The notes under the pieces: model-generated
What the model was told of the DNA's origin: nothing
The model's database searches: none
What the model saw: only the letters and a program-made list of their open reading frames with translations
Position numbers and translations under genes: made by a program
Assembly (NCBI GenBank): GCA_964036045.1
Contig: OZ038378.1
Location: forward strand, 171,244,001 to 171,308,000
Direction: 5' to 3'
Length of the DNA stretch: 64,000 nucleotides
Source of the DNA: Eutreptiella sp. 'Long Island Sound 2002'
Lineage: Eukaryota > Protista > Euglenida
In this document: in pieces, positions 12,561 to 64,000 of the stretch
Layout of the letters: each line of letters opens with the position of its first letter
Position numbering within the stretch: the stretch's first letter is position 1

Positions 12561-12581
12561 GGTGCAGTGGTGGGGCGATAC

Positions 12582-38229: not shown

Positions 38230-38540
38230 TGTGGGAAATTTCCAAGTGCAAAGTGAGAAACAATGTAGGTTTCCAAGGCGGACGGGCCGCGGAAATGAAG
38301 GGGAGGGGGGCTGTTTTTATGCCATAAAGTCAAAGAGCACCCATTGCATCCAAGCAAAGGGGCTGCATTGCGCATTAGCCCTAGGTGTATGATGCATAAA
38401 AGCTTGGACAGAAGAGCAAGGGTTACAGTGCCGAAGTTGGACAAAGATGTGATGTTGCTTGCAAACCCGTCCATCATGGAAAAAACTTTGCGTTGCGCCT
38501 TCTCCTCTCTCGTGTACTGACTGGTTGCACCCCCCCCCCC

Positions 38541-38940
38541 ATCCGCCCCCCGTGGGTGGCCCATGTGACATCCGCCCGCCGTGGGGGGCCCATGTGACAT
38601 CCGCCCCCTGTGGGGGGCCCATGTGACATCCGCCCCAGTTGGGGGCCTATGTGACATCCGCCCCCCGTGGGGGACCCATGTGACATCCGCCCCCCGTGGG
38701 GGGCCCATGTGACATCCGCCCCCATGCGGGGCCTATGTGACATCCGCCCACCGTGGGGGGCCCATGTGACATGCACCCCCCGTGGGGGGCCCATGTGACA
38801 TGTGCCCCCCGTGGGGGGCCTATGTGACATGTGCCCCCCGTGGGGGGCCTATGTGACATCCGCCCCCTGTGGGGGGTCTATGTGACATCCGCCCCCCGTG
38901 GGGGCCCTTGTGACATCTGCCCCCCCGTGGGGGCCCATAT
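38541..38940. repeat. ~29-bp GC-rich minisatellite (CATGTGACATCCGCCCCCCGTGGGGGGCC), ~14 copies
   Basis: Read directly; each unit contains a C6-GT-G6 inverted repeat. Confidence 0.95.
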
Positions 38941-39761
38941 GTCTTGAGATTGGTGCAAAAAAAAGTTTCAAAACATCTAAAACACCTTACAGAGGGTTGT
39001 TAGATCAAATGCAGGTGCGAGCGCCGTTTATCCCCCTTTGTGAGTATTCGCATCACACACCCCAATGTGCGGAATTGGATGGTTAACCCCTTGTAAAATT
39101 GGAAGATAAACTGATCACCCAATGAGTTTTCTGATTTAGACCCCTCACCCCCTCCCCTGCAAGGGGACGTGTCGGCGACGGGCGTCAAGCAAAGGCGCGC
39201 AGTCAGTCACACAACAAAAGCCTCATCATTGGTACCACAGGAGCCTTGCCCCCCCCCCCCCCCCCCCGTGTGACATTCCGTCTGGTTGTTGTTCCTTTAC
39301 GGGGCCCTGGACAGTCACCCGTTCGTCCCTTCGCATGCTGCGTCGGGTTGCTGCTTTTTGTCAGCCGCTGCGGCCGGTGCTCTTGCTGGCGTCGTGTCCG
39401 CGTTTGCGGAGCCCGGTAATTGGTGTGTTGGGGATGGGGGGAGGGTGGGGAAATCAAAAAAATGGGGCTGTTTAGTCGCACTTGAAAATTTCGAAAACTT
39501 GACCTTTTCGAAAACCGTTCAACGGATTCCGGGTGGGTTCAGGTCATCCTTTGGGGACAATACGGGTACTCCAGCACCCATAGCCCCCCCCCCCCCCCCA
39601 AAGGCCCGAATTCGTATTTGGCTGTGCAGTGGCATCTGAAAATTGACCTTGTCCGAAAACCTTCTATGGGCCTTGGAATGGGCTTGGGATGGGAGTCATT
39701 GTTTGGTGGCAAAACAGGTACTCTAGCACCAATTGGGACCCATGTAGCGGCTGCTGGTACA

Positions 39762-39962
39762 TTTGGAAAATTGTATCCTCAGTTTTACACTATACTAACG
39801 TTCTATTGCCCTTGGCAAAGCAGCTTGAAGAGGGGTGGGCACCCTCACGGCTTTGGCTACATAGGCCTAGTTGCTGCCACCCATGGGTGCTGAAACACGC
39901 ATAATGGAACAAAATGTTGAACCCATTGCATAGGCAAAAGAAGGTTTTGGGAAAATTCGAAG
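39762..39962 (+). repeat. ~200-bp direct repeat, copy 2
   Basis: Near-identical to 38027-38229. Confidence 0.92.
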
Positions 39963-40420
39963 GCTGATCACAGGATTTTGGTGGTAGTATGAGACATTCT
40001 TCAGCTTACCAACGAATTTCCAATGGACAGGGTGCCCTCCACTACTTTGAACAAGGGTTCTGGAACAAAAACTTTTTTTTGAAAAAATTGTGTATTCAGT
40101 TCTACAACGGACCCCCTAATGATCCGTGAATAGGGCTTGGGTGTAGCATTGGAAGAAGCTGTGCAGTGCAGCACTGGGGCCAGTGTCGTTCAAGCCCCCG
40201 CAACAGAGAGGGAGGCGGGCTTGGCGGGGCTCCTGCAACTCATTGCTGCAACATTCTTTCTGCCTTTTATCTCAGCCTGACTTTGTGTTGCCTGCGTGAG
40301 AAAGCGTGATTGTGATTAATTCTAAATTCCTGAGGCCAATGCGTCCCTGTGTTCAAAAAACTGCCGTACCATCCCCACTCTGCGTGCACTTGGCCACATG
40401 CTTTGTGTCCGGAATCGCAC

Positions 40421-40624
40421 CTTGTTTGAATCCTTAAATTGCTTCTGCGCACCCAGAAGACGCAGGCGTAGCTGGTCAATTGTCTCCGCAGGCTCATACA
40501 CAACGGGCGCAGCCTCAAGCTCCTCGCCAGTGTCCGGGTCGAATATGGGTTCACGGAGGAAATTCACCCAATACGTTGGTTGCTGACAGAGCCCAGCTAC
40601 TTCGTCTCCGAAAAACTCCGTTAC
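40421..40624 (-). CDS. DNAH5: Dynein heavy chain exon (first in window), AAA3-AAA4 linker: VTEFFGDEV...VYEPAETIDQLRLRL...DSNK
   Basis: Acceptor GTGCAG|GTA, donor AAG|GTGCGA; 204 nt, phase 0-0; matches DNAH5-type 'YFVDFLRD...KIYEPIES'. Confidence 0.9.
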
Positions 40625-42277
40625 CTGCACCAGCAACAGCAATAAGTGTCGACAAAACCTCAGTGGATCTGGAGGGGACAGCCAGTCACGATAAAATAAA
40701 GATATGTTGATTGCATAAACATGAGTTTTGGTGTGTGTCATGTGGATTTGAAGAATCACTAAGCAAACAAAACAGCAATTGTTGAACAAAGCGGTCCCAC
40801 CATCAAAAGCTGGGAGGGAAACCATCGTGCCTGGAGTAACTCAGCTACAACACATGAAAGCCGCCAAATCGTGATGCGAATTTGACAACCATGAGGATCG
40901 GCTACCCCTGGCTAAAGCAGAAGGAGCCCCTTCAGCCCCTTCAGCAGCGCAACGCAACCCCATCGCTGAAACCAACTGCCACAGGTTCGGCGTGGTAGTG
41001 CGTAATGGCATTATCAGTTGGTATTTTATAATCACGATGTCAATAGTCCTCAACCAAGTTTTCATCACCTGCACTCCTCAACGAAAGCGCGCCTTGGGAG
41101 ACGGCAGATTCTGATTTCCGGACAGTTGCTGCGACACTGCACCCCAAAGCCCAAATCCCGAGAGTGACATGATGACATCATGGATGTCAGACACAAGCAC
41201 ATGACAATACCAGGTGGTAGTTCATAATCAGGATGTCAATAGTCCTCAACCAAGATTTCATCATCTGCACACCATCACTCGACTCCTGCACCAAGCACCT
41301 CAAAGCATACAATGTCACAGCATATGACATCAATCCTAAAATGTGAGCCCCTCTGCACCTGCTGAATTACTGCACATGACACAGAAACATCCATTGCGTA
41401 CAATGCAAAGATCGAATATCTCCGGATCATCCGGGAGAGTGTACGCCATTAGCACACGTCACTCCTTCACATGAGCCCTAAGCATTGTTGCAGATTTGTA
41501 TCACATCAAACATTGACACAATCAGGTGGTGTTTGATAATCATTTGCTCAGGCAGTCCTCAACCAAAATATCACCATCCGAATCTCATGCATCGAGCCGT
41601 AGACCAACAGATTGCAATGAACCAACACGGATGTTCAAGGATCAATGAAAAAACAGGTTTGCAACCCCTTCAGCAGTGCAAAGAATCCCAATCGCTGAAA
41701 CCAACTGCCACAGGTTCGGCGTGGCAGTGCGTAATGGCATTATCAGGTGGTATTTTATAATCAGGATGTCAATAGTCCTCAACCAAGATTTCATCATCTT
41801 CACACCATCACTCGACTCCTGCACCAAGCACCTCAAAGCATACAATGTCACAGCATATGACATCAATCCTAAAATGTGAGCCCCTCTGCACCTGCTGAAC
41901 TACTGCACATGACACAGAGTAACACCCATTGCGTACAATGCAAAGATCGAATATCTCCGGATCATCCCGAAGAGTGTACGCCATTAGCACACGTCACTCC
42001 TTCACATGAGCCCTAAGCATTGTTGCAGATTCGTATCACATCAAACATTGACACAATCAGGTGGTGTTTGATAATCATTTGCTCAGGCAGTCCTCAACCA
42101 AAATATCATCATCCGAATCTCATGCATCGAGCCGTAGACCAACAGATTGCAATGAACCAACACGGATGTTCAAGGATCAATGAAAAAACAGGTTTGCAAC
42201 CCCTTCAGCAGTGCAACGTATCCCAATCGCTGAAACCAACTGCCACAGGTTCGGCGTGGCAGTGCGTAATGGCATTA

Positions 42278-42332
42278 TCAGGTGGTATTTTATAATCACG
42301 ATGTCAATAGTCCTCAACCAAGATTTCATCAC
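42278..42332 (-). ncRNA. Representative type-1 variant module in a long unit (GTGATGA C box, GTGATTA C' box)
   Basis: The substitutions at C and C' stay inside or move toward the RUGAUGA consensus. Confidence 0.65.
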
Positions 42333-45300
42333 CTGCACTCCTCCACGAAAGCGCGCCTTGGGAGACGGCAGATTCTGATTTCCGGACAGTTGCTGCGACA
42401 CTGCACCCCAAAGCCCCAATCCCGAAAGTGACATGATGACATGATGGATGTCAGACACAAGCACATGACAATATCAGGTGGTATTTCATAATCAGGATGT
42501 CAATAGTCCTCAACCTAGTTTTCGTCATCTGCATACCATCACTCGACTCCTGCACCAAGCACCTCAAAGCATACAATGTCACAGCATATGACATCAATCC
42601 TAAAATGTGAGCCCCTCTGCACCTGCTGAATTACTGCACATGACACAGAGTAACACCCATTGCGTACAATGCAAAGATCGAATATCTCCGGATCATCCCG
42701 AAGAGTGTACGCCATTAGCACACGTCACTCCTTCACATGAGCCCTAAGCATTGTTGCAGATTCGTATCACATCAAACATTGACACAATCAGGTGGTGTTT
42801 GATAATCATTTGCTCAGGCAGTCCTCAACCAAAATATCATCATCCGAATCTCATGCATCGAGCCGTAGACCAACAGATTGCAATGAACCAACATGGATGT
42901 TGAAGGATCAATGGAAAGCAGGTTTGCAACCCCTTCAGCAGTGCAAGGTATCCCAATCGCTGAAACCAACTGCCACAGGTTCGGCGTGGCAACGGGTAAT
43001 GGCATTATCAGGTGGTATTTTATAATCACGATGTCAATAGTCCTCAACCAAGTTTTCATCACCTGCACTCCTCCACGAAAGCGCGCCTTGGGAGACGGCA
43101 GATTCTGATTTCCGGACAGTTGCTGCGACACTGCACCCCAAAGCCCAAATCCCGAAAGTGACATGATGACATGATGGATGTCAGACACAAGCACATGACA
43201 ATATCAGGTGGTATTTCATAATCAGGATGTCAATAGTCCTCAACCAAGATTTCATCATCTGCACACCATCACTCGACTCCTGCACCAAGCACCTCAAAGC
43301 ATACAATGTCACAGCATATGACATCAATCCTAAAATGTGAGCCCCTCTGCACCTGTGGAACTACTGCACATGACACAGCGTAACACCCATTGCGTATCGA
43401 TGGAATATCTCCGGATCATCCGGAAGAGTGTACGCCATTAGCACACGTCACTCCTTCACATGAGCCCTAAGCATTGTTGCAGATTCGTATCACATCAAAC
43501 ATTGACACAATCAGGTGGTGTTTGATAATCATTTGCTCAGGCAGTCCTCAACCAACATATCATCATCCGAATCTCATGCATCGAGCCGTAGACCAACAGA
43601 TTGCAATGAACCAACACGGATGTTGAAGGATCAATGAAAAAGCAGGTTTGCAACCCCTTCAGCAGTGCAAAGAATCCCCATCGCTGAAAACAACTGCCAG
43701 AGGTTCGGCATGGTAGTGCGTGATGGCATTATCAGGTGGTATTTTATAATCAGGATGTCAATAGTCCTCAACCAAGATTTCATCATCTGCACACCATCAC
43801 TCGACTCCTGCACCAAGCACCTCAAAGCATACAATGTAACGGGATTTGACATCAATCCTAAAATGTGAGCCCCTCTGCACCTGTGAAACTACTGCACATG
43901 ACACAGAGTAACACCCACTGCGTATCGATGAAATATGTCCGGATCATCCGGAAGAGTGTACGCCATTAGCACACGTCACTCCTTCACATGAGCCCTAAGC
44001 ATTGTTGCAGATTCGTATCACATCAAACATTGACACAATCAGGTGGTGTTTGATAATCATTTGCTCATGCAGTCCTCAACCAAAATATCATCATCCGAAT
44101 CTCATGCATCGAGCCGTAGACCAACAGATTGCAATGAACCAACACGGATGTTCAAGGATCAATGAAAAAACAGGTTTGCAACCCCTTCAGCAGTGCAAAG
44201 AATCCCAATCGCTGAAACCAACTGCCACAGGTTCGGCGTGGTAGTGCGTAATGGCATTATCAGGTGGTATTTTATAATCAGGATGTCAATAGTCCTCAAC
44301 CAAGATTTCATCATCTTCACACCATCACTCGACTCCTGCACCAAGCACCTCAAAGCATACAATGTCACAGCATATGACATCAATCCTAAAATGTGAGCCC
44401 CTCTGCACCTGCTGAATTACTGCACATGACACAGAGTAACACCCATTGCGTACAATGCAAAGATCGAATATCTCCGGATCATCCCGAAGAGTGTACGCCA
44501 TTAGCACACGTCACTCCTTCACATGAGCCCTAAGCATTGTTGCAGATTCGTATCACATCAAACATTGACACAATCAGGTGGTGTTTGATAATCATTTGCT
44601 CAGGCAGTCCTCAACCAAAATATCACCATCCGAATCTCATGCATCGAGCCGTAGACCAACAGATTGCAATGAACCAACACGGATGTTGAAGGATCAATGA
44701 AAAAACAGGTTTGCAGCCCCTTCAGCAGTGCAACGCATCCCAATCGCTGAAAACAACTGCCACAGGTTCGGCGTGGCAGTGCGTAATGGCATTATCAGGT
44801 GGTATTTTATAATCAGGATGTCAATAGTCCTCAACCAAGATTTCATCATCTGCACACCATCACTCGACTCCTGCACCAAGCACCTCAAAGCATACAATGT
44901 CACAGCATATGACATCAATCCTAAAATGTGAGCCCCTCTGCACCTGCTGAACTACTGCACATGACACAGAGTAACACCCATTGCGTACAATGCAAAGATC
45001 GAATATCTCCGGATCATCCGGGAGAGTGTACGCCATTAGCACACGTCACTCCTTCACATGAGCCCTAAGCATTGTTGCAGATTCGTATCACATCAAACAT
45101 TGACACAATCAGGTGGTGTTTGATAATCATTTGCTCAGGCAGTCCTCAACCAAAATATCATCATCCGAATCTCATGCATCGAGCCGTAGACCAACAGATT
45201 GCAATGAACCAACATGGATGTTGAAGGATAAATGGAAAGCAGGTTTGCAACCCCTTCAGCAGTGCAAGGTATCCCAATCGCTGAAACCAACTGCCACAGT

Positions 45301-47623
45301 TTCGGCGTGGCAACGGGTAATGGCATTATCAGGTGGTATTTTATAATCACGATGTCAATAGTCCTCAACCAAGTTTTCATCACCTGCACTCCTCCACGAA
45401 AGCGCGCCTTGGGAGACGGCAGATTCTGATTTCCGGACAGTTGCTGCGACACTGCACCCCAAAGCCCCAATCCCGAAAGTGACATGATGACATGATGGAT
45501 GTCAGAGACAAGCACATGACAATAACAGGTGGTATTTTATAATCAGGATGTCAATAGTCCTCAACCAAGATTTCATCATCTGCACACCATCACTCGACTC
45601 CTGCACCAAGCACCTCAAAGCATACAATGTCACAGCATATGACATCAATCCTAAAATGTGAGCCCCTCTGCACCTGTGAAACTACTGCACATGAGACAGC
45701 GTAACACCCATTGCGTATCGATGGAATATCTCCGGATCATCCGGAAGAGTGTACGCCATTAGCACACGTCACTCCTTCACATGAGCTCTAAGCATTGTTG
45801 CAGATTCGTATCACATCAAACATTGACACAATCAGGTGGTGTTTGATAATCATTTGCTCAGGCAGTCCTCAACCAAAATATCATCATCCGAATCTCATGC
45901 ATCGAGCCGTAGACCAACAGATTGCAATGAACCAACATGGATGTTGAAGGATAAATGGAAAGCAGGTTTGCAACCCCTTCAGCAGTGCAAGGTATCCCAA
46001 TCGCTGAAACCAACTGCCACAGGTTCGGCGTGGCAACGGGTAATGGCATTATCAGGTGGTATTTTATAATCACGATGTCAATAGTCCTCAACCAAGTTTT
46101 CATCACCTGCACTCCTCCACGAAAGCGCGCCTTGGGAGACGGCAGATTCTGATTTCCGGACAGTTGCTGCGACACTGCACCCCAAAGCCCAAATCCCGAA
46201 AGTGACATGATGACATGATGGATGTCAGAGACAAGCACATGACAATATCAGGTGGTATTTTATAATCAGGATGTCAATAGTCCTCAACCAAGATTTCATC
46301 ATCTGCACACCATCACTCGACTCCTGCACCAAGCACCTCAAAGCATACAATGTCACAGCATATGACATCAATCCTAAAATGTGAGCCCCTCTGCACCTGT
46401 GAAACTACTGCACATGACACAGCGTAACACGCATTGCGTATCGATGGAATATCTCCGGATCATCCGGAAGAGTGTACGCCATTAGCACACGTCACTCCTT
46501 CACATGAGCCCTAAGCATTGTTGCAGATTTGTATCACATCAAACATTGACACAATCAGGTGGTGTTTGATAATCATTTGCTCAGGCAGTCCTCAACCAAC
46601 ATATCATCATCCGAATCTCATGCATCGAGCCGTAGACCAACAGATTGCAATGAACCAACACGGATGTTGAACGATCAATGGAAAAACAGGTTTGCAACCC
46701 CTTCAGCAGTGCAACGCATCCCAATCACTGAAAACAACTGCCACAGGTTCGGCATGGTAGTGCGTAATGGCATTATCAGGTGGTATTTTATAATCACGAT
46801 GTCAATAGTCCTCAACCAAGATTTCATCATCTGCACACCATCACTCGACTCCTGCACCAAGCACCTCAAAGCATACAATGTCACAGCATATGACATCAAT
46901 CCTAAAATGTGAGCCCCTCTGCACCTGCTGAATTACTGCACATGACACAGAGTAACACCCATTGCGTACAATGCAAAGATCGAATATCTCCGGATCATCC
47001 GGAAGAGTGTACGCCATTAGCACACGTCACTCCTTCACATGAGCCCTAAGCATTGTTGCAGATTCGTATCACATCAAACATTGACACAATCAGGTGGTGT
47101 TTGATAATCATTTGCTCAGGCAGTCCTCAACCAACATATCATCATCCGAATCTCATGCATCGAGCCGTAGACCAACAGATTGCAATGAACCAACACGGAT
47201 GTTGAAGGATCAATGGAAAACAGGTTTGCAACCCCTTCAGCAGTGCAACGTATCCCAATCGCTGAAGCCCAATGCCACAGGTTCGGCGTGGCAGTGCGTA
47301 ATGGCATTATCAGGTGGTATTTTATAATCAGGATGTCAATAGTCCTCAACCAAGATTTCATCATCTGCACACCATCACTCGACTCCTGCACCAAGCACCT
47401 CAAAGCATACAATGTCACAGCATATGACATCAATCCTAAAATGTGAGCCCCTCTGCACCTGCTGAACTACTGCACATGACACAGAGTAACACTCATTGCG
47501 TACAATGCAAAGATCGAATATCTCCGGATCATCCGGAAGAGTGTACGCCATTAGCACACGTCACTCCTTCACATGAGCCCTAAGCATTGTTGCAGATTCG
47601 TATCACATCAAACATTGACACAA

Positions 47624-47679
47624 TCAGGTGGTGTTTGATAATCATTTGCTCAGGCAGTCCTCAACCAACATATCATCAT
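47624..47679 (-). ncRNA. Representative box C/D snoRNA-like module, type 2 (56 nt; ~40 copies in the array)
   Basis: ATGATGA(C)-TATGTTGGTTGAGGACTGC-CTGA(D')-GCAA-ATGATTA(C')-TCAAACACCAC-CTGA(D). Target not identified. Confidence 0.7.
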
Positions 47680-47843
47680 CCGAATCTCATGCATCGAGCC
47701 GTAGACCAACAGATTGCAATGAACCAACACGGATGTTGAAGGATCAATGGAAAACAGGTTTGCAACCCCTTCAGCAGTGCAACGCATCCCAATCGCTGAA
47801 ACCAAATGCCACAGGTTCGGCGTGGCAGTGCGTAATGGCATTA

Positions 47844-47898
47844 TCAGGTGGTATTTCATAATCAGGATGTCAATAGTCCTCAACCAAGATTTCATCAT
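47844..47898 (-). ncRNA. Representative box C/D snoRNA-like module, type 1 (55 nt; ~41 copies)
   Basis: ATGATGA(C)-AATCTTGGTTGAGGACTA-TTGA(D')-CATC-CTGATTA(C')-TGAAATACCAC-CTGA(D), with a 10-bp flanking stem. Confidence 0.65.
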
Positions 47899-50800
47899 CT
47901 GCACACCATCACTCGACTCCTGCACCAAGCACCTCAAAGCATACAATGTCACAGCATATGACATCAATCCTAAAATGTGAGCCCCTCTGCACCTGCTGAA
48001 CTACTGCACATGACACAGAGTAACACCCATTGCGTACAATGCAAAGAGCGAATATCTCCGGATCATCCGGAAGAGTGTACGCCATTAGCACACGTCACTC
48101 CTTCACATGAGCCCTAAGCATTGTTGCAGATTCGTATCACATCAAACATTGACACAATCAGGTGGTGTTTGATAATCATTTGCTCAGGCAGTCCTCAACC
48201 AAAATATCATCATCCGAATCTCATGCATCGAGCCGTAGACCAACAGATTGCAATGAACCAACACGGATGTTGAAGGATCAATGGAAAACAGGTTTGCAAC
48301 CCCTTCAGCAGTGCAACGCATCCCAATCGCTGAAACCAAATGCCACAGGTTCGGCGTGGCAGTGCGTAATGGCATTATCAGGTGGTATTTTATAATCAGG
48401 ATGTCAATAGTCCTCAACCAAGATTTCATCATCTGCACACCATCACTCGACTCCTGCACCAAGCACCTCAAAGCATACAATGTCACAGCATATGACATCA
48501 ATCCTAAAATGTGAGCCCCTCTGCACCTGCTGAACTACTGCACATGACACAGAGTAACACCCATTGGGTATCCATCGAATATCTCCGGATCATCCGGAAG
48601 AGTGTACGCCATTAGCACACGTCACTCCTTCACATGAGCCCTAAGCATTGTTGCAGATTCGTATCACATCAAACATTGACACAATCAGGTGGTGTTTGAT
48701 AATCATTTGCTCAGGCAGTCCTCAACCAAAATATCACCATCCGAATCTCATGCATCGAGCCGTAGACCAACAGATTGCAATGAACCAACACGGATGTTGA
48801 AGGATCAATGAAAAAACAGGTTTGCAACCCCTTCAGCAGTGCAACGCATCCCCATCGCTGAAGCCCAATGCCACAGGTTCGGCGTGGTAGTGCGTAATGG
48901 CATTATCAGGTGGTATTTTATAATCAGGATGTCAATAGTCCTCAACCAAGATTTCATCATCTGCACACCATCACTCGACTCCTGCACCAAGCACCTCAAA
49001 GCATACAATGTCACAGCATATGACATCAATCCTAAAATGTGAGCCCCTCTGCACCTGCTGAACTACTGCACATGACACAGAGTAACACCCATTGCGTACA
49101 ATGCAAAGATCGAATATCTCCGGATCATCCCGAAGAGTGTACGCCATTAGCACACGTCACTCCTTCACATGAGCCCTAAGCATTGTTGCAGATTCGTATC
49201 ACATCAAACATTGACACAATCAGGTGGTGTTTGATAATCATTTGCTCAGGCAGTCCTCAACCAAAATATCACCATCCGAATCTCATGCATCGAGCCGTAG
49301 ACCAACAGATTGCAATGAACCAACACGGATGTTGAAGGATCAATGAAAAAACAGGTTTGCAACCCCTTCAGCAGTGCAACGCATCCCAATCGCTGAAAAC
49401 AACTGCCACAGGTTCGGCGTGGCAGTGCGTAATGGCATTATCAGGTGGTATTTTATAATCAGGATGTCAATAGTCCTCAACCAAGATTTCATCATCTGCA
49501 CACCATCACTCGACTCCTGCACCAAGCACCTCAAAGCATACAATGTCACAGCATATGACATCAATCCTAAAATGTGAGCCCCTCTGCACCTGCTGAACTA
49601 CTGCACATGACACAGAGTAACACCCATTGCGTACAATGCAAAGATCGAATATCTCCGGATCATCCGGGAGAGTGTACGCCATTAGCACACGTCACTCCTT
49701 CACATGAGCCCTAAGCATTGTTGCAGATTCGTATCACATCAAACATTGACACAATCAGGTGGTGTTTGATAATCATTTGCTCAGGCAGTCCTCAACCAAA
49801 ATATCATCATCCGAATCTCATGCATCGAGCCGTAGACCAACAGATTGCAATGAACCAACATGGATGTTGAAGGATAAATGGAAAGCAGGTTTGCAACCCC
49901 TTCAGCAGTGCAAGGTATCCCAATCGCTGAAACCAACTGCCACAGGTTCGGCGTGGCAACGGGTAATGGCATTATCAGGTGGTATTTTATAATCACGATG
50001 TCAATAGTCCTCAACCAAGTTTTCATCACCTGCACTCCTCCACGAAAGCGCGCCTTGGGAGACGGCAGATTCTGATTTCCGGACAGTTGCTGCGACACTG
50101 CACCCCAAAGCCCACATCCCGAAACTGACATGATGACATGATGGATGTCAGAGACAAGCACATGACAATATCAGGTGGTATTTTATAATCAGGATGTCAA
50201 TAGTCCTCAACCAAGATTTCATCATCTGCACACCATCACTCGACTCCTGCACCAAGCACCTCAAAGCATACAATGTCACAGCATATGACATCAATCCTAA
50301 AATGTGAGCCCCTCTGCACCTGCTGAACTACTGCACATGACACAGAGTAACACCCATTGCGTACAATGCAAAGATCGAATATCTCCGGATCATCCGGGAG
50401 AGTGTACGCCATTAGCACACGTCACTCCTTCACATGAGCCCTAAGCATTGTTGCAGATTCGTATCACATCAAACATTGACACAATCAGGTGGTGTTTGAT
50501 AATCATTTGCTCAGGCAGTCCTCAACCAACATATCATCGTCCGAATCTCATGCATCGAGCCGTAGACCAACAGATTGCAATGAACCAACACGGATGTTGA
50601 ACGATCAATGGAAAAACAGGTTTGCAACCCCTTCAGCAGTGCAACGCATCCCCATCGCTGAAAACAACTGCCACAGGTTCGGCATGGTAGTGCATAATGG
50701 CATTATCAGGTGGTATTTTGTAATCACGATGTCAATAGTCCTCAACCAAGATTTCATCACCTGCACACCATCACTCGACTCCTGCACCAAGCACCTCAAA

Positions 50801-53800
50801 GCATACAATGTCACAGCATATGACATCAATCCTAAAATGTGAGCCCCTCTGCACCTGTGAAACTACTGCACATGACACAGAGTAACACCCATTGCGTACA
50901 ATGCAAAGAGCAAATATCTCCGGATCATCCGGAAGAGTGTACGCCATTAGCACACGTCACTCCTTCACATGAGCCCTAAGCATTGTTGCAGATTCGTATC
51001 ACATCAAACATTGACACAATCAGGTGGTGTTTGATAATCATTTGCTCAGGCAGTCCTCAACCAAAATATCATCATCCGAATCTCATGCATCGAGCCGTAG
51101 ACCAACAGATTGCAATGAACCAACACGGATGTTGAACGATCAATGGAAAACAGATTTGCAACCCCTTCAGCAGTGCAACGTATCCCAATCGCTGAAGCCC
51201 AATGCCACAGGTTCGGCGTGGCAGTGCGTAATGGCATTATCAGGTGGTATTTTATAATCACGATGTCAATAGTCCTCAACCAAGATTTCATCATCTGCAC
51301 ACCATCACTCGACTCCTGCACCAAGCACCTCAAAGCATACAATGTCACAGCATATGACATCAATCCTAAAATGTGAGCCCCTCTGCACCTGCTGAATTAC
51401 TGCACATGACACAGAGTAACACTCATTGCGTACAATGCAAAGATCGAATATCTCCGGATCATCCGGAAGAGTGTACGCCATTAGCACACGTCACTCCTTC
51501 ACATGAGCCCTAAGCATTGTTGCAGATTCGTATCACATCAAACATTGACACAATCAGGTGGTGTTTGATAATCATTTGCTCAGGCAGTCCTCAACCAACA
51601 TATCATCATCCGAATCTCATGCATCGAGCCGTAGACCAACAGATTGCAATGAACCAACACGGATGTTGAAGGATCAATGGAAAACAGGTTTCCAACCCCT
51701 TCAGCAGTGCAACGCATCCCAATCGCTGAAACCAAATGCCACAGGTTCGGCGTGGTAGTGCGTAATGGCATTATCAGGTGGTATTTCATAATCAGGATGT
51801 CAATAGTCCTCAACCAAGATTTCATCATCTGCACACCATCACTCGACTCCTGCACCAAGCACCTCAAAGCATACAATGTCACAGCATATGACATCAATCC
51901 TAAAATGTGAGCCCCTCTGCACCTGCTGAACTACTGCACATGACACAGAGTAACACCCATTGCGTACAATGCAAAGATTGAATATCTCCGGATCATCCGG
52001 AAGAGTGTACGCCATTAGCACACGTCACTCCTTCACATGAGCCCTAAGCATTGTTGCAGATTCGTATCACATCAAACATTGACACAATCAGGTGGTGTTT
52101 GATAATCATTTGCTCAGGCAGTCCTCAACCAAAATATCATCATCCGAATCTCATGCATCGAGCCGTAGACCAACAGATTGCAATGAACCAACACGGATGT
52201 TGAAGGATCAATGGAAAACAGGTTTGCAACCCCTTCAGCAGTGCAACGCATCCCAATCGCTGAAACCAAATGCCACAGGTTCGGCGTGGCAGTGCGTAAT
52301 GGCATTATCAGGTGGTATTTCATAATCAGGATGTCAATAGTCCTCAACCAAGATTTCATCGTCTGCACACCATCACTCGACTCCTGCACCAAGCACCTCA
52401 AAGCATACAATGTCACAGCATATGACATCAATCCTAAAATGTGAGCCCCTCTGCACCTGCTGAACTACTGCACATGACACAGAGTAACACCCATTGCGTA
52501 CAATGCAAAGATCGAATATCTCCGGATCATCCGGAAGAGTGTACGCCATTAGCACACGTCACTCCTTCACATGAGCCCTAAGCATTGTTGCAGATTCGTA
52601 TCACATCAAACATTGACACAATCAGGTGGTGTTTGATAATCATTTGCTCAGGCAGTCCTCAACCAAAATATCATCATCCGAATCTCATGCATCGAGCCGT
52701 AGACCAACAGATTGCAATGAACCAACACGGATGTTGAAGGATCAATGGAAAACAGGTTTGCAACCCCTTCAGCAGTGCAACGCATCCCAATCGCTGAAAA
52801 CAACTGCCACAGGTTCGGCATGGCAGTGCGTAATGGCATTATCAGGTGGTATTTTATAATCAGGATGTCAATAGTCCTCAACCAAGATTTCATCATCTGC
52901 ACACCATCACTCGACTCCTGCACCAAGCACCTCAAAGCATACAATGTCACAGCATATGACATCAATCCTAAAATGTGAGCCCCTCTGCACCTGCTGAACT
53001 ACTGCACATGACACAGAGTAACACCCATTGCGTACAATGCAAAGATCGAATATCTCCGGATCATCCGGAAGAGTGTACGCCATTAGCACACGTCACTCCT
53101 TCACATGAGCCCTAAGCATTGTTGCAGATTCGTATCACATCAAACATTGACACAATCAGGTGGTGTTTGATAATCATTTGCTCAGGCAGTCCTCAACCAA
53201 AATATCATCATCCGAATCTCATGCATCGAGCCGTAGACCACCAGATTAGAATGAACCAACACGGATGTTGAACGATCAATGGAAAACAGATTTGCAACCC
53301 CTTCAGCAGTGCAAAGCATCCCAATCGCTGAAACCCAATGCCACAGGTTCGGCGTGGCAGTGCGTAATGGCATCATCAGGTGGTATTTTATAATCAGGAT
53401 GTCAATAGTCCTCAACCAAGATTTCATCATCTGCACACCATCACTCGACTCCTGCACCAAGCACCTCAAAGCATACAATGTCACAGCATATGACATCAAT
53501 CCTAAAATGTGAGCCCCTCTGCACCTGTGAAACTACTGCACATGACACAGAGTAACACCCATTGCGTATCGATGGAATACCTCCGGATCATCCGGGAGAG
53601 TGTACGCCATTAGCACACGTCACTCCTTCACATGAGCCCTAAGCATTGTTGCAGATTCGTATCACATCAAACATTGACACAATCAGGTGGTGTTTGATAA
53701 TCAGTTGCTCAGGCAGTCCTCAACCAAAATATCATCATCCGAATCTCATGAATCGAGCCGTAGACCAACAGATTGCAATGAACCAACACGGATGTTGAAC

Positions 53801-56800
53801 GATCAATGGAAAACAGGTTTGCAACCCCTTCAGCAGTGCAACATATCCCAATCGCTGAAACCCAATGCCACAGGTTCGGCGTGGCAGTGCGTAATGGCAT
53901 TATCAGGTGGTATTTTATAATCAGGATGTCAATAGTCCTCAACCAAGATTTCATCATCTGCACACCATCACTCGACTCCTGCACCAAGCACCTCAAAGCA
54001 TACAATGTCACAGCATATGACATCAATCCTAAAATGTGAGCCCCTCTGCACCTGCTGAACTACTGCACATGACACAGAAACACCCATTGTGTATCCATCG
54101 AATATCTCCGGATCATCCGGAAGAGTGTACGCCATTAGCACACGTCACTCCTTCACATGAGCTCTAAGCATTGTTGCAGATTCGTAACACATCAAACATT
54201 GACACAATCAGGTGGTGTTTGATAATCATTTGCTCAGGCAGTCCTCAACCAAAATATCATCATCCGAATCTCATGCATCGAGCCGTAGACCAACAGATTG
54301 CAATGAACCAACACGGATGTTGAAGGATCAATGAAAAAACAGGTTTGCAACCCCTTCAGCAGTGCAACGCATCCCAATCGCTGAAAACCACTGCCACAGG
54401 TTCGGCATGGTAGTGCGTAATGGCATTATCAGGTGGTATTTTATAATCACGATGTCAATAGTCCTCAACCAAGATTTCATCATCTGCACACCATCACTCG
54501 ACTCCTGCACCAAGCACCTCAAAGCATACAATGTCACAGCATATGACATCAATCCTAAAATGTGAGCCCCTCTGCACCTGTGGAACTACTGCACATGACA
54601 CAGAAACACCCATTGCGTACAATGCAAAGATCGAATATCTCCGGATCATCCGGCAAAGTTTACGCCATTAGCACACGTCACTCCTTCACATGAGCCCTAA
54701 GCATTGTTGCAGATTCGTATCACATCAAACATTGACACAATCAGGTGGTGTTTGATAATCATTTGCTCAGGCAGTCCTCAACCAAAATATCATCATCCGA
54801 ATCTCATGCATCGAGCCGTAGACCAACAGATTGCAATGAACCAACACGAATGTTGAAGGATCAATGGAAAACAGGTTTGCAACCCCTTCAGCAGTGCAAC
54901 GCATCCCAATCGCTGAAAACAACTGCCACAGGTTCGGCGTGGTAGTGCGTAATGGCATTATCAGGTGGTATTTTATAATCACGATGTCAATAGTCCTCAA
55001 CCGAGATTTCATCATCTGCACACCATCACTCGACTCCTGCACCAAGCACCTCAAAGCATACAATGTCACAGCATATGACATCAATCCTAAAATGTGAGCC
55101 CCTCTGCACCTGCTGAACTACTGCATATGACACAGAAACACCTCTGGTGTATCGATCGAATATCTCCGGATCATCCGGAAGAGTGTACGCCATTAGCACA
55201 CGTCACTCCTTCACATGAGCCCTAAGCATTGTTGCAGATTTGTATCACATCAAACATTGACACAATCAGGTGGTGTTTGATAATCATTTGCTCAGGCAGT
55301 CCTCAACCAAAATATCATCATCCGAATCTCATGCATCGAGCCGTAGACCAACAGATTGCAATGAACCAACACGGATACTGAACGATCAATGAAAAAACAG
55401 GTTTGCAACCCCTTCAGCAGTGCAACGCATCCCAATCGCTGAAAACAACTGCCACAGGTTCGGCATGGTAGTGCGTGATGGCATTATCAGGTGGTATTTT
55501 ATAATCAGGATGTCAATAGTCCTCAACCAAGATTTCATCATCTGCACACCATCACTCGACTCCTGCACCAAGCACCTCAAAGCATACAATGTCACAGCAT
55601 ATGACATCAATCCTAAAATGTGAGCCCCTCTGCACCTGCTGAATTACTGCACATGACACAGAGTAACACCCATTGCGTACAATGCAAAGATCGAATATCT
55701 CCGGATCATCCGGGAGAGTGTATGCCATTAGCACACGTCACTCCTTCACATGAGCCCTAAGCATTGTTGCAGATTCGTATCACATCAAACATTGACACAA
55801 TCAGGTGGTGTTTGATAATCATTTGCTCAGGCAGTCCTCAACCAAAATATCATCATCCGAATCTCATGCATCGAGCCGTAGACCAACAGATTGCAATGAA
55901 CCAACACGGATGTTGAACGATCAATGGAAAACAGGTTTGCAACCCCTTCAGCAGTGCAACGCATCCCAATCGCTGAAACCAAATGCCACAGGTTCGGCGT
56001 GGCAGTGCGTAATGGCATTATCAGGTGGTATTTTATAATCAGGATGTCAATAGTCCTCAACCAAGATTTCATCATCTGCACACCATCACTCGACTCCTGC
56101 ACCAAGCACCTCAAAGCATACAATGTCACAGCATATGACATCAATCCTAAAATGTGAGCCCCTCTGCACCTGTGGAACTACTGCACATGACACAGAGTAA
56201 CACCCATTGCGTACAATGCAAAGATCGAATATCTCCGGATCATCCGGAAGAGTGTACGCCATTAGCACACGTCACTCCTTCACATGAGCCCTAAGCATTG
56301 TTGCAGATTCGTAACACATCAAACATTGACACAATCAGGTGGTGTTTGATAATCATTTGCTCAGGCAGTCCTCAACCAAAATATCATCATCCGAATCTCA
56401 TGCATCGAGCCGTAGACCAACAGATTAGAATGAACCAACACGGATGTTGAACGATCAATGGAAAACAGGTTTGCAACCCCTTCAGCAGTGCAACGCATCC
56501 CCATCGCTGAAAACCACTGCCACAGGTTCGGCATGGTAGTGCGTAATGGCATTATCAGGTGGTATTTTATAATCAGGATGTCAATAGTCCTCAACCAAGA
56601 TTTCATCATCTGCACACCATCACTCGACTCCTGCACCAAGCACCTCAAAGCATACAATGTCACAGCATATGACATCAATCCTAAAATGTGAGCCCCTCTG
56701 CACCTGTGGAACTACTGCACATGACACAGAAACACCCATTGCGTACAATGCAAAGATCGAATATCTCCGGATCATCCGGAAGAGTGTACGCCATTAGCAC

Positions 56801-59800
56801 ACGTCACTCCTTCACATGAGCCCTAAGCATTGTTGCAGATTCGTAACACATCAAACATTGACACAATCAGGTGGTGTTTGATAATCATTTGCTCAGGCAG
56901 TCCTCAACCAAAATATCATCATCCGAATCTCATGCATCGAGCCGTAGACCAACAGATTAGAATGAACCAACACGGATGTTGAACGATCAATGGAAAACAG
57001 GTTTCCAACCCCTTCAGCAGTGCAACGCATCCCAATCGCTGAAAACAACTGCCACAGGTTCGGCGTGGTAGTGCGTAATGGCATTATCAGGTGGTATTTT
57101 ATAATCAGGATGTCAATAGTCCTCAACCAAGATTTCATCATCTGCACACCATCACTCGACTCCTGCACCAAGCACCTCAAAGCATACAATGTCACAGCAT
57201 ATGACATCAATCCTAAAATGTGAGCCCCTCTGCACCTGTGGAACTACTGCACATGACACAAAGAAACACCCATTGCGTACAATGCAAAGATCGAATATCT
57301 CCGGATCATCCGGAAGAGTGTACGCCATTAGCACACGTCACTCCTTCACATGAGCTCTAAGCATTGTTGCAGATTCGTATCACATCAAACATTGACACAA
57401 TCAGGTGGTGTTTGATAATCATTTGCTCAGGCAGTCCTCAACCAAAATATCATCATCCGAATCTCATGCATCGAGCCGTAGACCAACAGATTGCAATGAA
57501 CCAACACGGATGTTGAACGATCAATGGAAAACAGGTTTGCAACCCCTTCAGCAGTGCAAAGCATCCCAATCGCTGAAAACCACTGCCACAGGTTCGGCAT
57601 GGTAGTGCGTAATGGCATTATCAGGTGGTATTTTATAATCAGGATGTCAATAGTCCTCAACCAAGATTTCATCATCTGCACACCATCACTCGACTCCTGC
57701 ACCAAGCACCTCAAAGCATACAATGTCACAGCATATGACATCAATCCTAAAATGTGAGCCCCTCTGCACCTGTGGAACTACTGCACATGACACAGAGAAA
57801 CACCCATTGCGTACAATGCAAAGAGCGAATATCTCCGGATCATCCGGAAGAGTGTACGCCATTAGCACACGTCACTCCTTCACATGAGCCCTAAGCATTG
57901 TTGCAGATTCGTATCACATCAAACATTGACACAATCAGGTGGTGTTTGATAATCATTTGCTCAGGCAGTCCTCAACCAAAATATCATCATCCGAATCTCA
58001 TGCATCGAGCCGTAGACCAACAGATTGCAATGAACCAACACGGATGTTGAAGGATCAATGGAAAACAGGTTTGCAACCCCTTCAGCAGTGCAAAGCATCC
58101 CAATCGCTAAAAACCACTGCCACAGGTTCGGCGTGGTAGTGCGTAATGGCATTATCAGGTGGTATTTTATAATCAGGATGTCAATAGTCCTCAACCAAGA
58201 TTTCATCATCTGCACACCATCACTCGACTCCTGCACCAAGCACCTCAAAGCATACAATGTCACAGCATATGACATCAATCCTAAAATGTGAGCCCCTCTG
58301 CACCTGCTGAACTACTGCACATGACACAGAAACACCTCTGGTGTATCAATCGAATATCTCCGGATCATCCGGAAGAGTGTACGCCATTAGCACACGTCAC
58401 TCCTTCACATGAGCCCTAAGCATTGTTGCAGATTCGTATCACATCAAACATTGACACAATCAGGTGGTGTTTGATAATCATTTGCTCAGGCAGTCCTCAA
58501 CCAAAATATCATCATCCGAATCTCATGCATCGAGCCGTAGACCAACAGATTGCAATGAACCAACACGGATGTTGAACGATCAATGAAAAAACAGGTTTGC
58601 AACCCCTTCAGCAGTGCAACGCATCCCAATCGCTGAAACCAAATGCCACAGGTTCGGCATGGTAGTGCGTAATGGCATTATCAGGTGGTATTTTATAATC
58701 AGGATGTCAATAGTCCTCAACCAAGATTTCGTCATCTGCACACCATCACTCGACTCCTGCACCAAGCACCTCAAAGCATACAATGTCACAGCATATGACA
58801 TCAATCCTAAAATGTGAGCCCCTCTGCACCTGCTGAATTACTGCACATGACACAGAGTAACACCCATTGCGTACAATGCAAAGATCGAATATCTCCGGAT
58901 CATCCGGGAGAGTGTACGCCATTAGCACATGTCACTCCTTCACATGAGCTCTAAGCATTGTTGCAGATTTGTATCACATCAAACATTGACACAATCAGGT
59001 GGTGTTTGATAATCATTTGCTCAGGCAGTCCTCAACCAAAATATCATCATCCGAATCTCATGCATCGAGCCGTAGACCAACAGATTGCAATGAACCAACA
59101 CGGATGTTGAACGATCAATGAAAAAACAGGTTTGCAACCCCTTCAGCAGTGCAACGCATCCCAATCGCTGAAAACAACTGCCACAGGTTCGGCGTGGCAG
59201 TGCGTAATGGCATTATCAGGTGGTATTTTATAATCAGGATGTCAATAGTCCTCAACCAAGATTTCATCATCTGCACACCATCACTCGACTCCTGCACCAA
59301 GCACCTCAAAGCATACAATGTCACAGCATATGACATCAATCCTAAAATGTGAGCCCCTCTGCACCTGTGGGACTACTGCACATGACACAGAGTAACACCC
59401 ATTGCGTACAATGCAAAGAGCGAATATCTCCGGATCATCCGGAAGAGTGTACGCCATTAGCACACGTCACTCCTTCACATGAGCCCTAAGCATTGTTGCA
59501 GATTCGTATCACATCAAACATTGACACAATCAGGTGGTGTTTGATAATCATTTGCTCAGGCAGTCCTCAACCAAAATATCATCATCCGAATCTCATGCAT
59601 CGAGCCGTAGACCAACAGATTGCGATGAACCAACACGGATGTTGAAGGATCAATGAAAAAACAGGTTTGCAACCCCTTCAGCAGTGCAAAGCATCCCAAT
59701 CGCTGAAAACAACTGCCAGAAGTTCGGCGTGGCAGTGCGTAATGGCATTATCAGGTGGTATTTTATAATCAGGATGTCAATAGTCCTCAACCAAGATTTC

Positions 59801-62800
59801 ATCATCTGCACACCATCACTCGACTCCTGCACCAAGCACCTCAAAGCATACAATGTCACAGCATATGACATCAATCCTAAAATGTGAGCCCCTCTGCACC
59901 TGTGGAACTACTGCACATGACACAGAGAAACACCCATTGCGTACAATGCAAAGATCGAATATCTCCGGATCATCCGGAAGAGTGTACGCCATTAGCACAC
60001 GTCACTCCTTCACATGAGCCCTAAGCATTGTTGCAGATTCGTATCACATCAAACATTGACACAATCAGGTGGTGTTTGATAATCATTTGCTCAGGCAGTC
60101 CTCAACCAAAATATCATCATCCGAATCTCATGCATCGAGCCGTAGACCAACAGATTGCAATGAACCAACACGGATGTTGAACGATCAATGGAAAACAGGT
60201 TTGCAACCCCTTCAGCAGTGCAACGTATCCCAATCGCTGAAAACCACTGCCACAGGTTCGGCGTGGTAGTGCGTAATGGCATTATCAGGTGGTATTTTAT
60301 AATCACGATGTCAATAGTCCTCAACCAAGATTTCATCATCTGCACACCATCACTCGACTCCTGCACCAAGCACCTCAAAGCATACAATGTCACAGCATAT
60401 GACAGCAATCCTAAAATGCGAGCCCCTCTGCACCTGCTGAACTACTGCATATGACACAGAAACACCTCTGGTGTATCGATCGAATATCTCCGGATCATCC
60501 GGAAGAGTGTACGCCATTAGCACACGTCACTCCTTCACATGAGCCCTAAGCATTGTTGCAGATTCGTATCACATCAAACATTGACACAATCAGGTGGTGT
60601 TTGATAATCATTTGCTTAGGCAGTCCTCAACCAAAATATCATCATCCGAATCTCATGCATCGAGCTGTAGACCAACAGATTGCAATGAACCAACACGGAT
60701 GTTGAGCGATCAATGGAAAACAGGTTTGCAACCCCTTCAGCAGTGCAACGCATCCCCATCGCTGAAAACAACTGCCACAGGTTAGGCGTGGCAGTGCGTA
60801 ATGGCATTATCAGGTGGTATTTTATAATCAGGATGTCAATAGTCCTCAACCAAGATTTCATCATCTGCACACCATCACTCGACTCCTGCACCAAGCACCT
60901 CAAAGCATACAATGTCACAGCATATGACATCAATCCTAAAATGTGAGCCCCTCTGCACCTGCTGAACTACTGCATATGACACAGAAACACCTCTGGTGTA
61001 TCGATAGAATATCTCCGGATCATCCGGGAGAGTGTACGCCATTAGCACACGTCACTCCTTCACATGAGCCCTAAGCATTGTTGCAGATTCGTATCACATC
61101 AAACATTGACACAATCAGGTGGTGTTTGATAATCATTTGCTCAGGCAGTCCTCAACCAAAATATCATCATCCGAATCTCATGCATCGAGCCGTAGACCAA
61201 CAGATTGCAATGAACCAACACGGATGTTGAACGATCAATGGAAAACAGGTTTGCAACCCCTTCAGCAGTGCAATGCATCCCAATCGCTGAAAACAACTGC
61301 CACAGGTTCGGCGTGGCAGTGCGTAATGGCATTATCAGGTGGTATTTTATAATCAGGATGTCAATAGTCCTCAACCAAGATTTCATCATCTGCACACCAT
61401 CACTCGACTCCTGCACCAAGCACCTCAAAGCATACAATGTCACAGCATATGACATCAATCCTAAAATGTGAGCCCCTCTGCACCTGCTGAACTACTGCAC
61501 ATGACACAGAGTAACACCCATTGCGTACAATGCAAAGATCGAATATCTCCGGATCATCCGGAAGAGTGTACGCCATTAGCACACGTCACTCCTTCACATG
61601 AGCCCTAAGCATTGTTGCAGATTCGTATCACATCAAACATTGACACAATCAGGTGGTGTTTGATAATCATTTGCTCAGGCAGTCCTCAACCAAAATATCA
61701 TCATCCGAATCTCATGCATCGAGCCGTAGACCAACAGATTGCAATGAACCAACACGGATGTTGAAGGATCAATGAAAAAACAGGTTTGCAACCCCTTCAG
61801 CAGTGCAACGCATCCCCATCGCTGAAACCAAATGCCACAGGTTCGGCATGGTAGTGCGTAATGGCATTATCAGGTGGTATTTTATAATCAGGATGTCAAT
61901 AGTCCTCAACCAAGATTTCATCATCTGCACACCATCACTCGACTCCTGCACCAAGCACCTCAAAGCATACAATGTCACAGCATGTGACAGCAATCCTAAA
62001 ATGTGAGCCCCTCTGCACCTGTGGAACTACTGCATATGACACACAATTACCTCTGGTGTATCGATCGAATATCTCCGGATCATCCGGGAGAGTGTACGCC
62101 ATTAGCACACGTCACTCCTTCACATGAGCCCTAAGCATTGTTGCAGATTTGTATCACATCAAACATTGACACAATCAGGTGGTGTTTGATAATCATTTGC
62201 TCAGGCAGTCCTCAACCAAAATATCATCATCCGAATCTCATGCATCGAGCCGTAGACCAACAGATTGCAATGAACCAACACGGATGTTGAACGATCAATG
62301 GAAAACAGGTTTGCAACCCCTTCAGCAGTGCAACGCATCCCCATCGCTGAAAACAACTGCCAGAGGTTCGGCGTGGTAGTGCGTAATGGCATTATCAGGT
62401 GGTATTTTATAATCAGGATGTCAATAGTCCTCAACCAAGATTTCATCATCTGCACACCATCACTCGACTCCTGCACCAAGCACCTCAAAGCATACAATGT
62501 CACAGCATATGACATCAATCCTAAAATGTGAGCCCCTCTGCACCTGCTGAACTACTGCATATGACACAGAAACACCTCTGGTGTATCGATCGAATATCTC
62601 CGGATCATCCGGGAGAGTGTACGCCATTAGCACACGTCACTCCTTCACATGAGCCCTAAGCATTGTTGCAGATTCGTATCACATCAAACATTGACACAAT
62701 CAGGTGGTGTTTGATAATCAGTTGCTCAGGCAGTCCTCAACCAAAATATCATCATCCGAATCTCATGCATCGAGCCGTAGACCAACAGATTGCAATGAAC

Positions 62801-64000
62801 CAACACGGATGTTGAACGATCAATGAAAAAACAGGTTTGCAACCCCTTCAGCAGTGCAAAGCATCCCAATCGCTGAAAACAACTGCCAGAGGTTCGGCAT
62901 GGTAGTGCGTAATGGCATTATCAGGTGGTATTTTATAATCAGGATGTCAATAGTCCTCAACCAAGATTTCATCATCTGCACACCATCACTCGACTCCTGC
63001 ACCAAGCACCTCAAAGCATACAATGTCACAGCATATGACATCAATCCTAAAATGTGAGCCCCTCTGCACCTGTGGAACTACTGCACATGACACAGAGAAA
63101 CACCCATTGCGTACAATGCAAAGAGCGAATATCTCCGGATCATCCGGAAGAGTGTACGCCATTAGCACACGTCACTCCTTCACATGAGCCCTAAGCATTG
63201 TTGCAGATTTGTATCACATCAAACATTGACACAATCAGGTGGTGTTTGATAATCATTTGCTCAGGCAGTCCTCAACCAAAATATCATCATCCGAATCTCA
63301 TGCATCGAGCCGTAGACCAACAGATTGCAATGAACCAACACGGATGTTGAACGATCAATGGAAAACAGGTTTGCAACCCCTTCAGCAGTGCAACGCATCC
63401 CCATCGCTGAAAACAACTGCCACAGGTTCGGCATGGTAGTGCGTAATGGCATTATCAGGTGGTATTTTATAATCAGGATGTCAATAGTCCTCAACCAAGA
63501 TTTCATCATCTGCACACCATCACTCGACTCCTGCACCAAGCACCTCAAAGCATACAATGTCACAGCATATGACATCAATCCTAAAATGTGAGCCCCTCTG
63601 CACCTGTGAAACTACTGCACATGACACAGAAACACTCATTGCGTACAATGCAAAGATCGAATATCTCCGGATCATCCGGAAGAGTGTACGCCATTAGCAC
63701 ACGTCACTCCTTCACATGAGCTCTAAGCACACCCTTAAAATAAACACTGGCCCGAGGCTTTTCGGCCAGCGGCCAGTAGACTGTAAATTGTTGTAAATTT
63801 TGTTGTAAATTCCACCTTTTTTTGAGAGAAATCCAAAAAAAATTGTACCTTTTTACTTGTTTTATGCATCCTTCTTCCTACCCATTCCCCAAATGCTTCA
63901 TAAGACACAATTAGTCATTCATGCATATGACCTAGACACCACTAACACCACTCTGCTTGAATGCTGTTTTTTTACAACTCTGGACGTGTGCTGTTTATTC

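Follow-up and report, generated by a model that had tools for sequence, protein, structure and literature searches.

A tandem array of box C/D snoRNA-like modules within a dynein heavy chain intron of the euglenid Eutreptiella sp.

Clustered, multi-copy and linked genes for small nucleolar RNAs (snoRNAs) are known from Euglena and trypanosomatids (PMC2784804), and in both Euglena and Chlamydomonas such genes reside mainly in polycistronic clusters with multiple isoforms (PMC7671301). Tandemly repeated, polycistronic clusters of guide snoRNA genes are described for Euglena gracilis (Moore & Russell 2012, as summarized in PMC7671301), and reiterated clusters of box C/D and H/ACA-like genes, expressed as polycistronic transcripts, for trypanosomatids (as summarized in PMC2784804 and PMC3273796). 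Intronic snoRNA clusters processed from a polycistronic precursor are found in plants and Ostreococcus, intronic clusters also occur in Chlamydomonas (PMC7671301), and the mammalian imprinted SNORD115/SNORD116 and SNORD113/114 loci are tandem arrays of C/D genes (PMC2766290). Here we describe a locus from the euglenid Eutreptiella sp. 'Long Island Sound 2002' (assembly GCA_964036045.1, contig OZ038378.1, positions 171,244,001 to 171,308,000; this stretch of 64,000 nucleotides is referred to as the window, and all coordinates below are window positions), in which units of ~534 bp, each carrying two paralogous box C/D snoRNA-like modules, are repeated in tandem within an intron of a dynein heavy chain gene. 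We consider it probable that these modules are intron-borne, tandemly amplified genes of compact box C/D snoRNAs that guide the methylation of two adjacent nucleotides.

The locus brings together the tandemly repeated cluster and the intronic cluster, both of them layouts already on record, and represents no new class of system; what is unusual here is the high copy number, together with a host gene unrelated to ribosome synthesis. A first-pass annotation of the window, made from its sequence, had spoken of an extreme amplification: the copy number is real, but the layout is one already known from Euglena, trypanosomatids, plants and green algae. As in Euglenozoan clusters, each of the head-to-tail repeat units carries two guide-like genes with a common orientation. 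With the Euglena gracilis clusters the array shares a euglenid host, compact C/D RNAs, same-strand genes in a tandemly repeated unit and isoforms arising by duplication, and it differs from them in its position within an intron of a protein-coding gene, in having only two closely related genes per unit, in its long spacers (164 and 259 nt between modules), in the presence of 87 modules in one block of the window and in that its polycistronic transcription and mature RNAs are predictions. Paralogous guides shifted to neighbouring sites are also a feature of Euglena, and in this respect resemble the two module types of the array. Trypanosomatid clusters are likewise Euglenozoan, clustered, same-strand and composed of repeated guide genes, which are processed there from long precursors, whereas their C/D genes are mixed with H/ACA-like genes and are non-intronic because those organisms have almost no cis-introns. 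The clusters of plants, Chlamydomonas and Ostreococcus are similar in placing several snoRNAs, in sense orientation, within one intron of a protein-coding host; introns of this kind need a splicing-independent endonucleolytic release of their snoRNAs, unlike animal introns, which as a rule carry a single snoRNA each. The plant and green-algal intronic clusters generally hold a handful of different snoRNAs, whereas in the present array one cassette is repeated about 40 times or more and occupies over 23 kb, in a dynein host rather than a ribosome-related one. The SNORD115/116 and SNORD113/114 loci resemble it in their dozens of near-identical tandem C/D copies within a repeat masked as satellite; there, however, every copy has an intron to itself in a non-coding host transcript and the products are orphans without a known rRNA target, whereas in the present locus a single intron of a coding gene houses the entire set and the contigs give no sign of splicing inside the unit. 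A literature search returned no paper on a euglenid array of this type, a result that is not firm, as the main Euglena snoRNA papers lay outside that search.

The repeated units fill the window from 40936 to 63729 on the minus strand, head to tail, as delineated by BLAST of one 534-bp unit against the window, in which the individual copies are 94.4–99.6% identical. Cut at a flank anchor, the array resolves into 34 standard units of 525–535 bp and five long units of 723–731 bp, with partial units at both ends. A weaker self-match inside the unit (positions 1–57 against 315–371, ~81% identity) corresponds to the two modules. The array is unlisted by a tandem repeat finder because its unit of ~534 bp exceeds the 500-bp period limit of that program, and the ORF translations of the window include no long open reading frames (ORFs) within it. 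In form it is a satellite, that is, a long head-to-tail series of near-identical non-coding units, and gene content is compatible with such a form.

A module census anchored on a common 13-mer (TTGGTTGAGGACT, up to 2 mismatches) yielded 87 modules in the window (40 of type 2, 41 of type 1 and six of a third variant, T1b) as well as one chance match on the plus strand, in agreement with the count of ~87 C/D-like modules in the first-pass annotation. Each module is 55–56 nt long and has a complete C, D', C', D order. The layouts given earlier for the two types turned out to be exact (with distances in nt, ATGATGA-19-CTGA-4-ATGATTA-11-CTGA for type 2 and ATGATGA-18-TTGA-4-(C/G)TGATTA-11-CTGA for type 1). 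The strict four-box pattern matches 68 times on the minus strand and never on the plus strand, and a wider version of it has 75 matches, all on the minus strand, compared with 0 in 100 dinucleotide-preserving shuffles. Canonical RUGAUGA and CUGA boxes are retained in 77 of the 87 modules, the 13-nt core is intact in 85, and the loop and D guide of type 2 are invariant in all 40 copies. The D' box (CTGA or TTGA) and the C' box (NTGATTA) are 4 nt apart in all three variants. With guide-like stretches of 18–19 nt before D' and 11 nt before D, and a 4-nt D'-C' loop, this geometry fits compact double-guide C/D RNAs.

Point mutations of the C box affect eight modules, reading ATGGTGA at 41577, 44629, 48740 and 49275, ACGATGA at 50540 and 52362, and ATGACGA at 58735 and 42528; the four places at which such changes had been noticed before (41577, 44629, 50540 and 52362) are thus found again together with others. 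The accompanying statement that D boxes are intact in every copy has to be corrected, as two type 1 copies have CTGT (about 45526) and CTGG (about 41211) instead. The D' box is altered in two type 2 copies (CTAA and ATGA). The coordinates of representative modules and of the surrounding features are collected in Table 1.

Table 1. Features of the array and its host gene (window positions; strand relative to the sequence as deposited).
Feature	Position	Strand	Basis
Tandem array with 87 box C/D-like modules	40936..63729	-	unit BLAST, unit lengths, module census, motif versus shuffles
Type 2 representative, 56 nt: loop GCAA, 11-nt D guide TCAAACACCAC; 40 copies	47624..47679	-	census, fold, weak Rfam matches (snoZ17, sR11)
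Type 1 representative, 55 nt: loop CATC, C' CTGATTA (some GTGATTA), D guide T(A/G)AAATACCAC; 41 copies	47844..47898	-	census, Rfam SNORD74
Type 1 module with terminal stem	47835..47909	-	folding; same stem in the SNORD74 alignment
T1b representative: C box GTGATGA, C' GTGATTA	46052..46106	-	census, BLAST, alignment
Non-repeat sequence where the array is interrupted or ends, at unit position ~94	63730..64000	.	sequence; BLAST match begins at unit position 94
Unique 3' tail of the intron, from the last partial unit to the 3' splice site (…ggtgcag/GTAACGG)	40625..40935	-	sequence; spliced-contig match ends at 40625
Dynein heavy chain exon directly downstream of the array; GT donor at 40420-40419	40421..40624	-	three metatranscriptome contigs
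Start of the next downstream dynein exon (…KKMDLVLFDM…), opening AAA4 / AAA_8	37689..37718	-	spliced-contig continuation; Pfam AAA_8 E 4e-26
Rest of the host gene in the window: AAA4, stalk, AAA5 and AAA6 exons	9800..40624	-	ORF translations; Pfam AAA_8, AAA_9, Dynein_heavy

The strongest internal sign of constraint comes from a comparison of the two module types. In an alignment of the three variants with their flanks, types 1 and 2 match at 46 of 56 module positions (~82%), the similarity peaking between C and D and falling to ~50% in the flanks, which bears out the earlier description of the two modules of a unit as paralogous. Boxes C and D are identical between them and boxes D' and C' differ by one base each; the core matches at 13 of 13 positions and the D guide at 9 of 11, compared with 0–1 of 4 for the D'-C' loop. 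Since both types are present in every unit, the duplication that produced them is older than the amplification of the unit. Their sole length difference lies between the core and D' (GC in type 2, A in type 1), and the common D' guide core, UUGGUUGAGGACU, stands one base further from D' in type 2 than in type 1. According to the fifth-nucleotide rule, a C/D snoRNA methylates the target nucleotide opposite the fifth guide position from D or D'; combined with this rule, the one-base register shift leads to the prediction that two adjacent nucleotides are methylated. Within the deduced target 5'-AGUCCUCAACCAA-3' (5'-AGUCC…), type 2 would address the U and type 1 the following C.

The host of the array was identified from minus-strand ORF fragments between 9.8 and 40.6 kb, which translate to a dynein heavy chain with Pfam matches to AAA_8 (E 4e-26 and 2e-11), AAA_9 (4e-30) and the D6 domain Dynein_heavy (7.5e-10). 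Splicing was assessed by mapping the contigs of three estuary metatranscriptomes and one DNA metagenome to positions 40300–41600. One contig per RNA run (571, 1871 and 1247 nt) matches 40419–40625 with 0 differences and extends beyond that match at either end into sequence that does not neighbour it in the genome. On the downstream side the extension corresponds exactly to 37689–37718, the start of the AAA4 exon, and the upstream extension is absent from the whole window even with 3 mismatches allowed. The upstream exon therefore lies outside the window, and a single intron extends from 40626 to 64000 or further (at least 23.4 kb) and contains the array in sense orientation. Thus, the array is located in one intron of an expressed host gene, on the host sense strand, as the first-pass annotation had proposed: the dynein domains are encoded on the minus strand, and the spliced contigs skip the region. 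The intron separates the exon coding for the end of AAA3 from that for the start of AAA4, and the exon at 40.4 kb has ordinary GT…AG splice ends. The anatomy of the array, its strand and intron location, and the expression and splicing of its host gene are in this way matters of direct observation. The occurrence of the dynein mRNA at 100% identity in the estuary metatranscriptomes indicates, in addition, that the organism or a very close strain is active there.

Three GGTGCAG motifs in the spacers of the unit resemble the genuine 3' splice site of the host exon (ctggtgcag/G). The sole joint that skips part of a unit (196 positions, 41027→41224) is also present in a contig of the DNA run and therefore reflects a genomic variant of the unit, not splicing within it.

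In the explanation that we hold to be probable, a two-gene cassette would have been amplified in tandem within the dynein heavy chain intron, with both predicted snoRNA genes in sense orientation and with predicted products of ~55 nt from C to D (roughly 60–75 nt with terminal stems). The array would be transcribed within the dynein pre-mRNA, or in a long same-strand polycistronic precursor, and Snu13, Nop56, Nop58 and fibrillarin would bind to its C/D kink-turns; single snoRNAs would then be set free by endonucleolytic cleavage of the spacers and exonucleolytic trimming to the protected ends, so that one host transcript would give rise to dozens of copies of each. The D' guides with their core would direct 2'-O-methylation, of the U by type 2 and of the next C by type 1, in a target that is presumably rRNA; a further pair of sites may be specified by the 11-nt D guides. 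The assembly of snoRNPs, the processing route, the methylation and the identity of the target are what we infer from the anatomy of the locus.

The terminal stem of type 1 (AUGGUGU/AUGCCAU), which joins boxes C and D, comprises 7 bp and extends to as many as 10 bp in the fold of the whole unit; the flanks of type 2 (GAUUCGG and UUGUGUC) pair imperfectly, at 6 of 7 positions counting wobbles. A relaxed Rfam search matched the modules exclusively to C/D snoRNA families, all on the minus strand (SNORD74, snoZ17, sR11 and snoU83D), with scores of 14–20 bits compared with gathering scores of 39–55. The modules are C/D-like in form yet members of no curated Rfam family: what they have in common with SNORD74, snoZ17 and sR11 is the generic C/D layout, without evidence of kinship in guides or targets, and the archaeal sR11 additionally resembles them in its compact geometry with short fixed spacers. 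A dedicated scan found no further C/D candidates with a terminal stem and internal boxes elsewhere in the window, and no H/ACA-like gene was recognised in the unit, with no scan having been aimed at H/ACA genes.

Sequence of the array occurs in four metatranscriptome runs and, under three organism labels, in several runs; these data are assembled contigs without strand or read ends. In the mapped RNA runs, the array contigs are 220–492 nt long and span a module, a spacer and a module. In the DNA run the array has a depth of 4.7 and the exon is without coverage.

Variation within the array was computed over the 34 standard units. The mean minor-allele frequency is 0.64% in modules and 2.8% in spacers, and polymorphic sites make up 10.8% and 19.6% of positions, respectively (Fisher p 0.036). 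This variation is clustered in a few spacer hot spots, and the spacer alignment positions from about 62 to 170 and from about 231 to 325 are as invariant as the modules. Set against the supposition that boxes are more conserved than spacers across copies, modules vary less on average, but several spacer stretches are equally invariant. As placements of module-sized windows rotated around the unit often score equal to or lower than the actual modules, we have dropped within-array variation as evidence; selection and homogenisation by unequal exchange account equally well for the pattern.

A number of observations weigh against the snoRNA gene explanation. The array word depth in RNA runs (3–7) is about that of the single-copy exon (7–9) despite the many copies per genome, the RNA contigs cover spacers as well as modules, and the unique intron tail has a depth of zero; an RNA signal of this kind would be expected from nascent intron RNA, or from DNA carry-over, at the copy number of the array. 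There are 0 Rfam matches at gathering thresholds, the best match being SNORD74 on type 1 (19.6 bits, E 0.2, gathering score 41). The C' box reads UGAUUA and not UGAUGA (one position off the consensus), the D' box of type 1 is UUGA, and a mutated C or D box is found in 10 of the 87 copies. In the rotation test, 158 of 535 placements vary as little as the modules. In folding energy the modules do not surpass shuffled sequence (z-scores close to 0), which is usual for C/D RNAs and hence uninformative. Finally, among at least 120 loci obtained by scanning metagenome contigs for GTAGTCCTCAACCA, none was listed with an rRNA context or a universal rRNA motif.

The latter search was one of several made for the target inferred from the guides, 5'-(G)UAGUCCUCAACCAA-3'. 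A gapped pattern that combined the targets of both guides, D' and D, gave 0 matches in a prokaryotic genome collection, the target 15-mer gave chance matches only, in viral contigs, and guide or target strings in the full texts of papers retrieved nothing but unrelated primer sequences. Within the window itself, pairing with the guides is limited to sites that have many G·U wobbles and look like chance matches. The predicted target may loosely resemble one small-subunit and one large-subunit rRNA stretch of yeast, neither of which we claim as the target. As the searched sequences included no rRNA of the source organism, the failure to find the target is uninformative and carries little weight.

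Part of this adverse evidence is what would be expected of a young satellite, seeded by a unit with a duplicated snoRNA and expanded by unequal crossing-over, with most or all copies idle or the working genes elsewhere, and with boxes that would owe their integrity solely to the youth and homogenisation of the copies. Such an origin is in keeping with the identity of 94–99.6% between units, with the invariance of long spacer stretches and the non-significant rotation test, with C- or D-box mutations in 11% of modules (and an altered D' in two more), with the breakage of terminal stems in the rearranged long units and with an RNA depth not above the copy number multiplied by a nascent-intron level. 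It is nevertheless unlikely in our estimation: across the older divergence of types 1 and 2 the boxes and guides have been kept and the loop and flanks have not, 77 of 87 modules are intact, and, by analogy with general snoRNA biology, a sense C/D motif with a terminal stem in a transcribed intron would be expected to assemble a snoRNP. A more radical view, by which the boxes arose by chance within a repeat or are part of a coding sequence or transposon, could appeal to the lack of Rfam family membership, but we regard it as extremely improbable in light of the 75 pattern matches against none in 100 shuffles, the confinement of modules to one strand, the lack of long ORFs in the array and the retention of all four boxes in two diverged paralogues.

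A different possibility concerns the products rather than the genes, which may be orphan C/D RNAs with targets other than rRNA, or longer RNAs similar to sno-lncRNAs that derive from the spacer separating two modules and are capped by snoRNPs at both termini, instead of classical guides. Dense snoRNP sites in one intron would shield the intervening stretches from exonucleases, contigs of the RNA libraries do cross from module through spacer to module, the spacers between modules contain long invariant stretches, and stable polycistronic snoRNA forms are known in Ostreococcus tauri (PMC7671301); moreover, no rRNA target was found in the collections searched. That such RNAs are the main products is highly unlikely, however, given the low RNA depth per copy. 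Recent homogenisation explains the spacer invariance equally, the missing target is uninformative without rRNA of the organism, and the one-base offset of otherwise identical guides is what is expected of guides for adjacent methylation sites. A related reading, in which the intron is a snoRNA 'amplifier' that also yields unit-length sno-lncRNA-like RNAs from the invariant spacers, or in which the modules are orphan guides acting on non-ribosomal RNA, is in our opinion quite unlikely; if it were true, the array would be more than a store of rRNA methylation guides.

Provided that the predicted snoRNAs are indeed made, this would be among the largest single-intron snoRNA arrays described, with one dynein transcript giving some forty copies of each of two guides, and the one-base divergence of these guides would be a clear example of new methylation sites arising via duplication. 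For genome annotation, the locus serves as a warning that euglenid sequence blocks masked as satellite can be gene arrays.

The third module variant, T1b, is restricted to the 3' half of the array (41.0–50.1 kb of the window): the five long units hold five of its six copies, and the sixth (about 41014–41068) belongs to the partial unit with which the array terminates on its 3' side. The long units begin at 42854, 43577, 45898, 46621 and 50551 and are ordered as a type 1 module with a replaced 3' flank, ~120 nt of different sequence, part of which looks like a D'-loop-C' segment, and a T1b module with the normal type 1 3' flank. This rearrangement divides the type 1 terminal stem between two modules, and T1b is without that stem because its 5' flank differs. 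The spacers of the unit consensus (e.g., 47680–48157, minus strand) also contain short perfect hairpins or palindromes, namely CCGGATGATCCGG, CATTGTACGCAATG and TGTCATATGCTGTGACA. At the other end of the block, the repeat halts at 63729 and gives way to AT-rich sequence unrelated to it, with a GC-rich hairpin (…CTGGCCGCTGGCCGAAAAGCCTCGGGCCAG…) at its end, and the stretch from 63730 to the end of the window may be a mobile-element insertion into the array.

Further repeats accompany the host gene. A 29-bp tandem repeat at 38540–38938 (about 14 copies, 89% matches), the unit of which holds a C6…G6 palindrome (CCCCCCGTGGGGGG), is located in the dynein intron between the 40.4-kb and 37.7-kb exons, and the ORFs running through it look spurious. 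A G-rich repeat of 37–38 bp at 32267–32362 and many long G or C runs between 20 and 33 kb are located in the dynein introns, and these tracts produce long spurious proline- or glycine-rich ORFs on both strands. The final dynein exon within the window (9800–10168) is followed downstream by a pentanucleotide microsatellite, (TTACA)n on the plus strand, which extends from 103 to 8826 (8.7 kb, about 1738 copies, 86% matches) and is probably in another dynein intron or in the 3' flank of the gene; the GC content of this tract falls to 29% with a strong strand skew, and related short arrays are found at 9265–9813.

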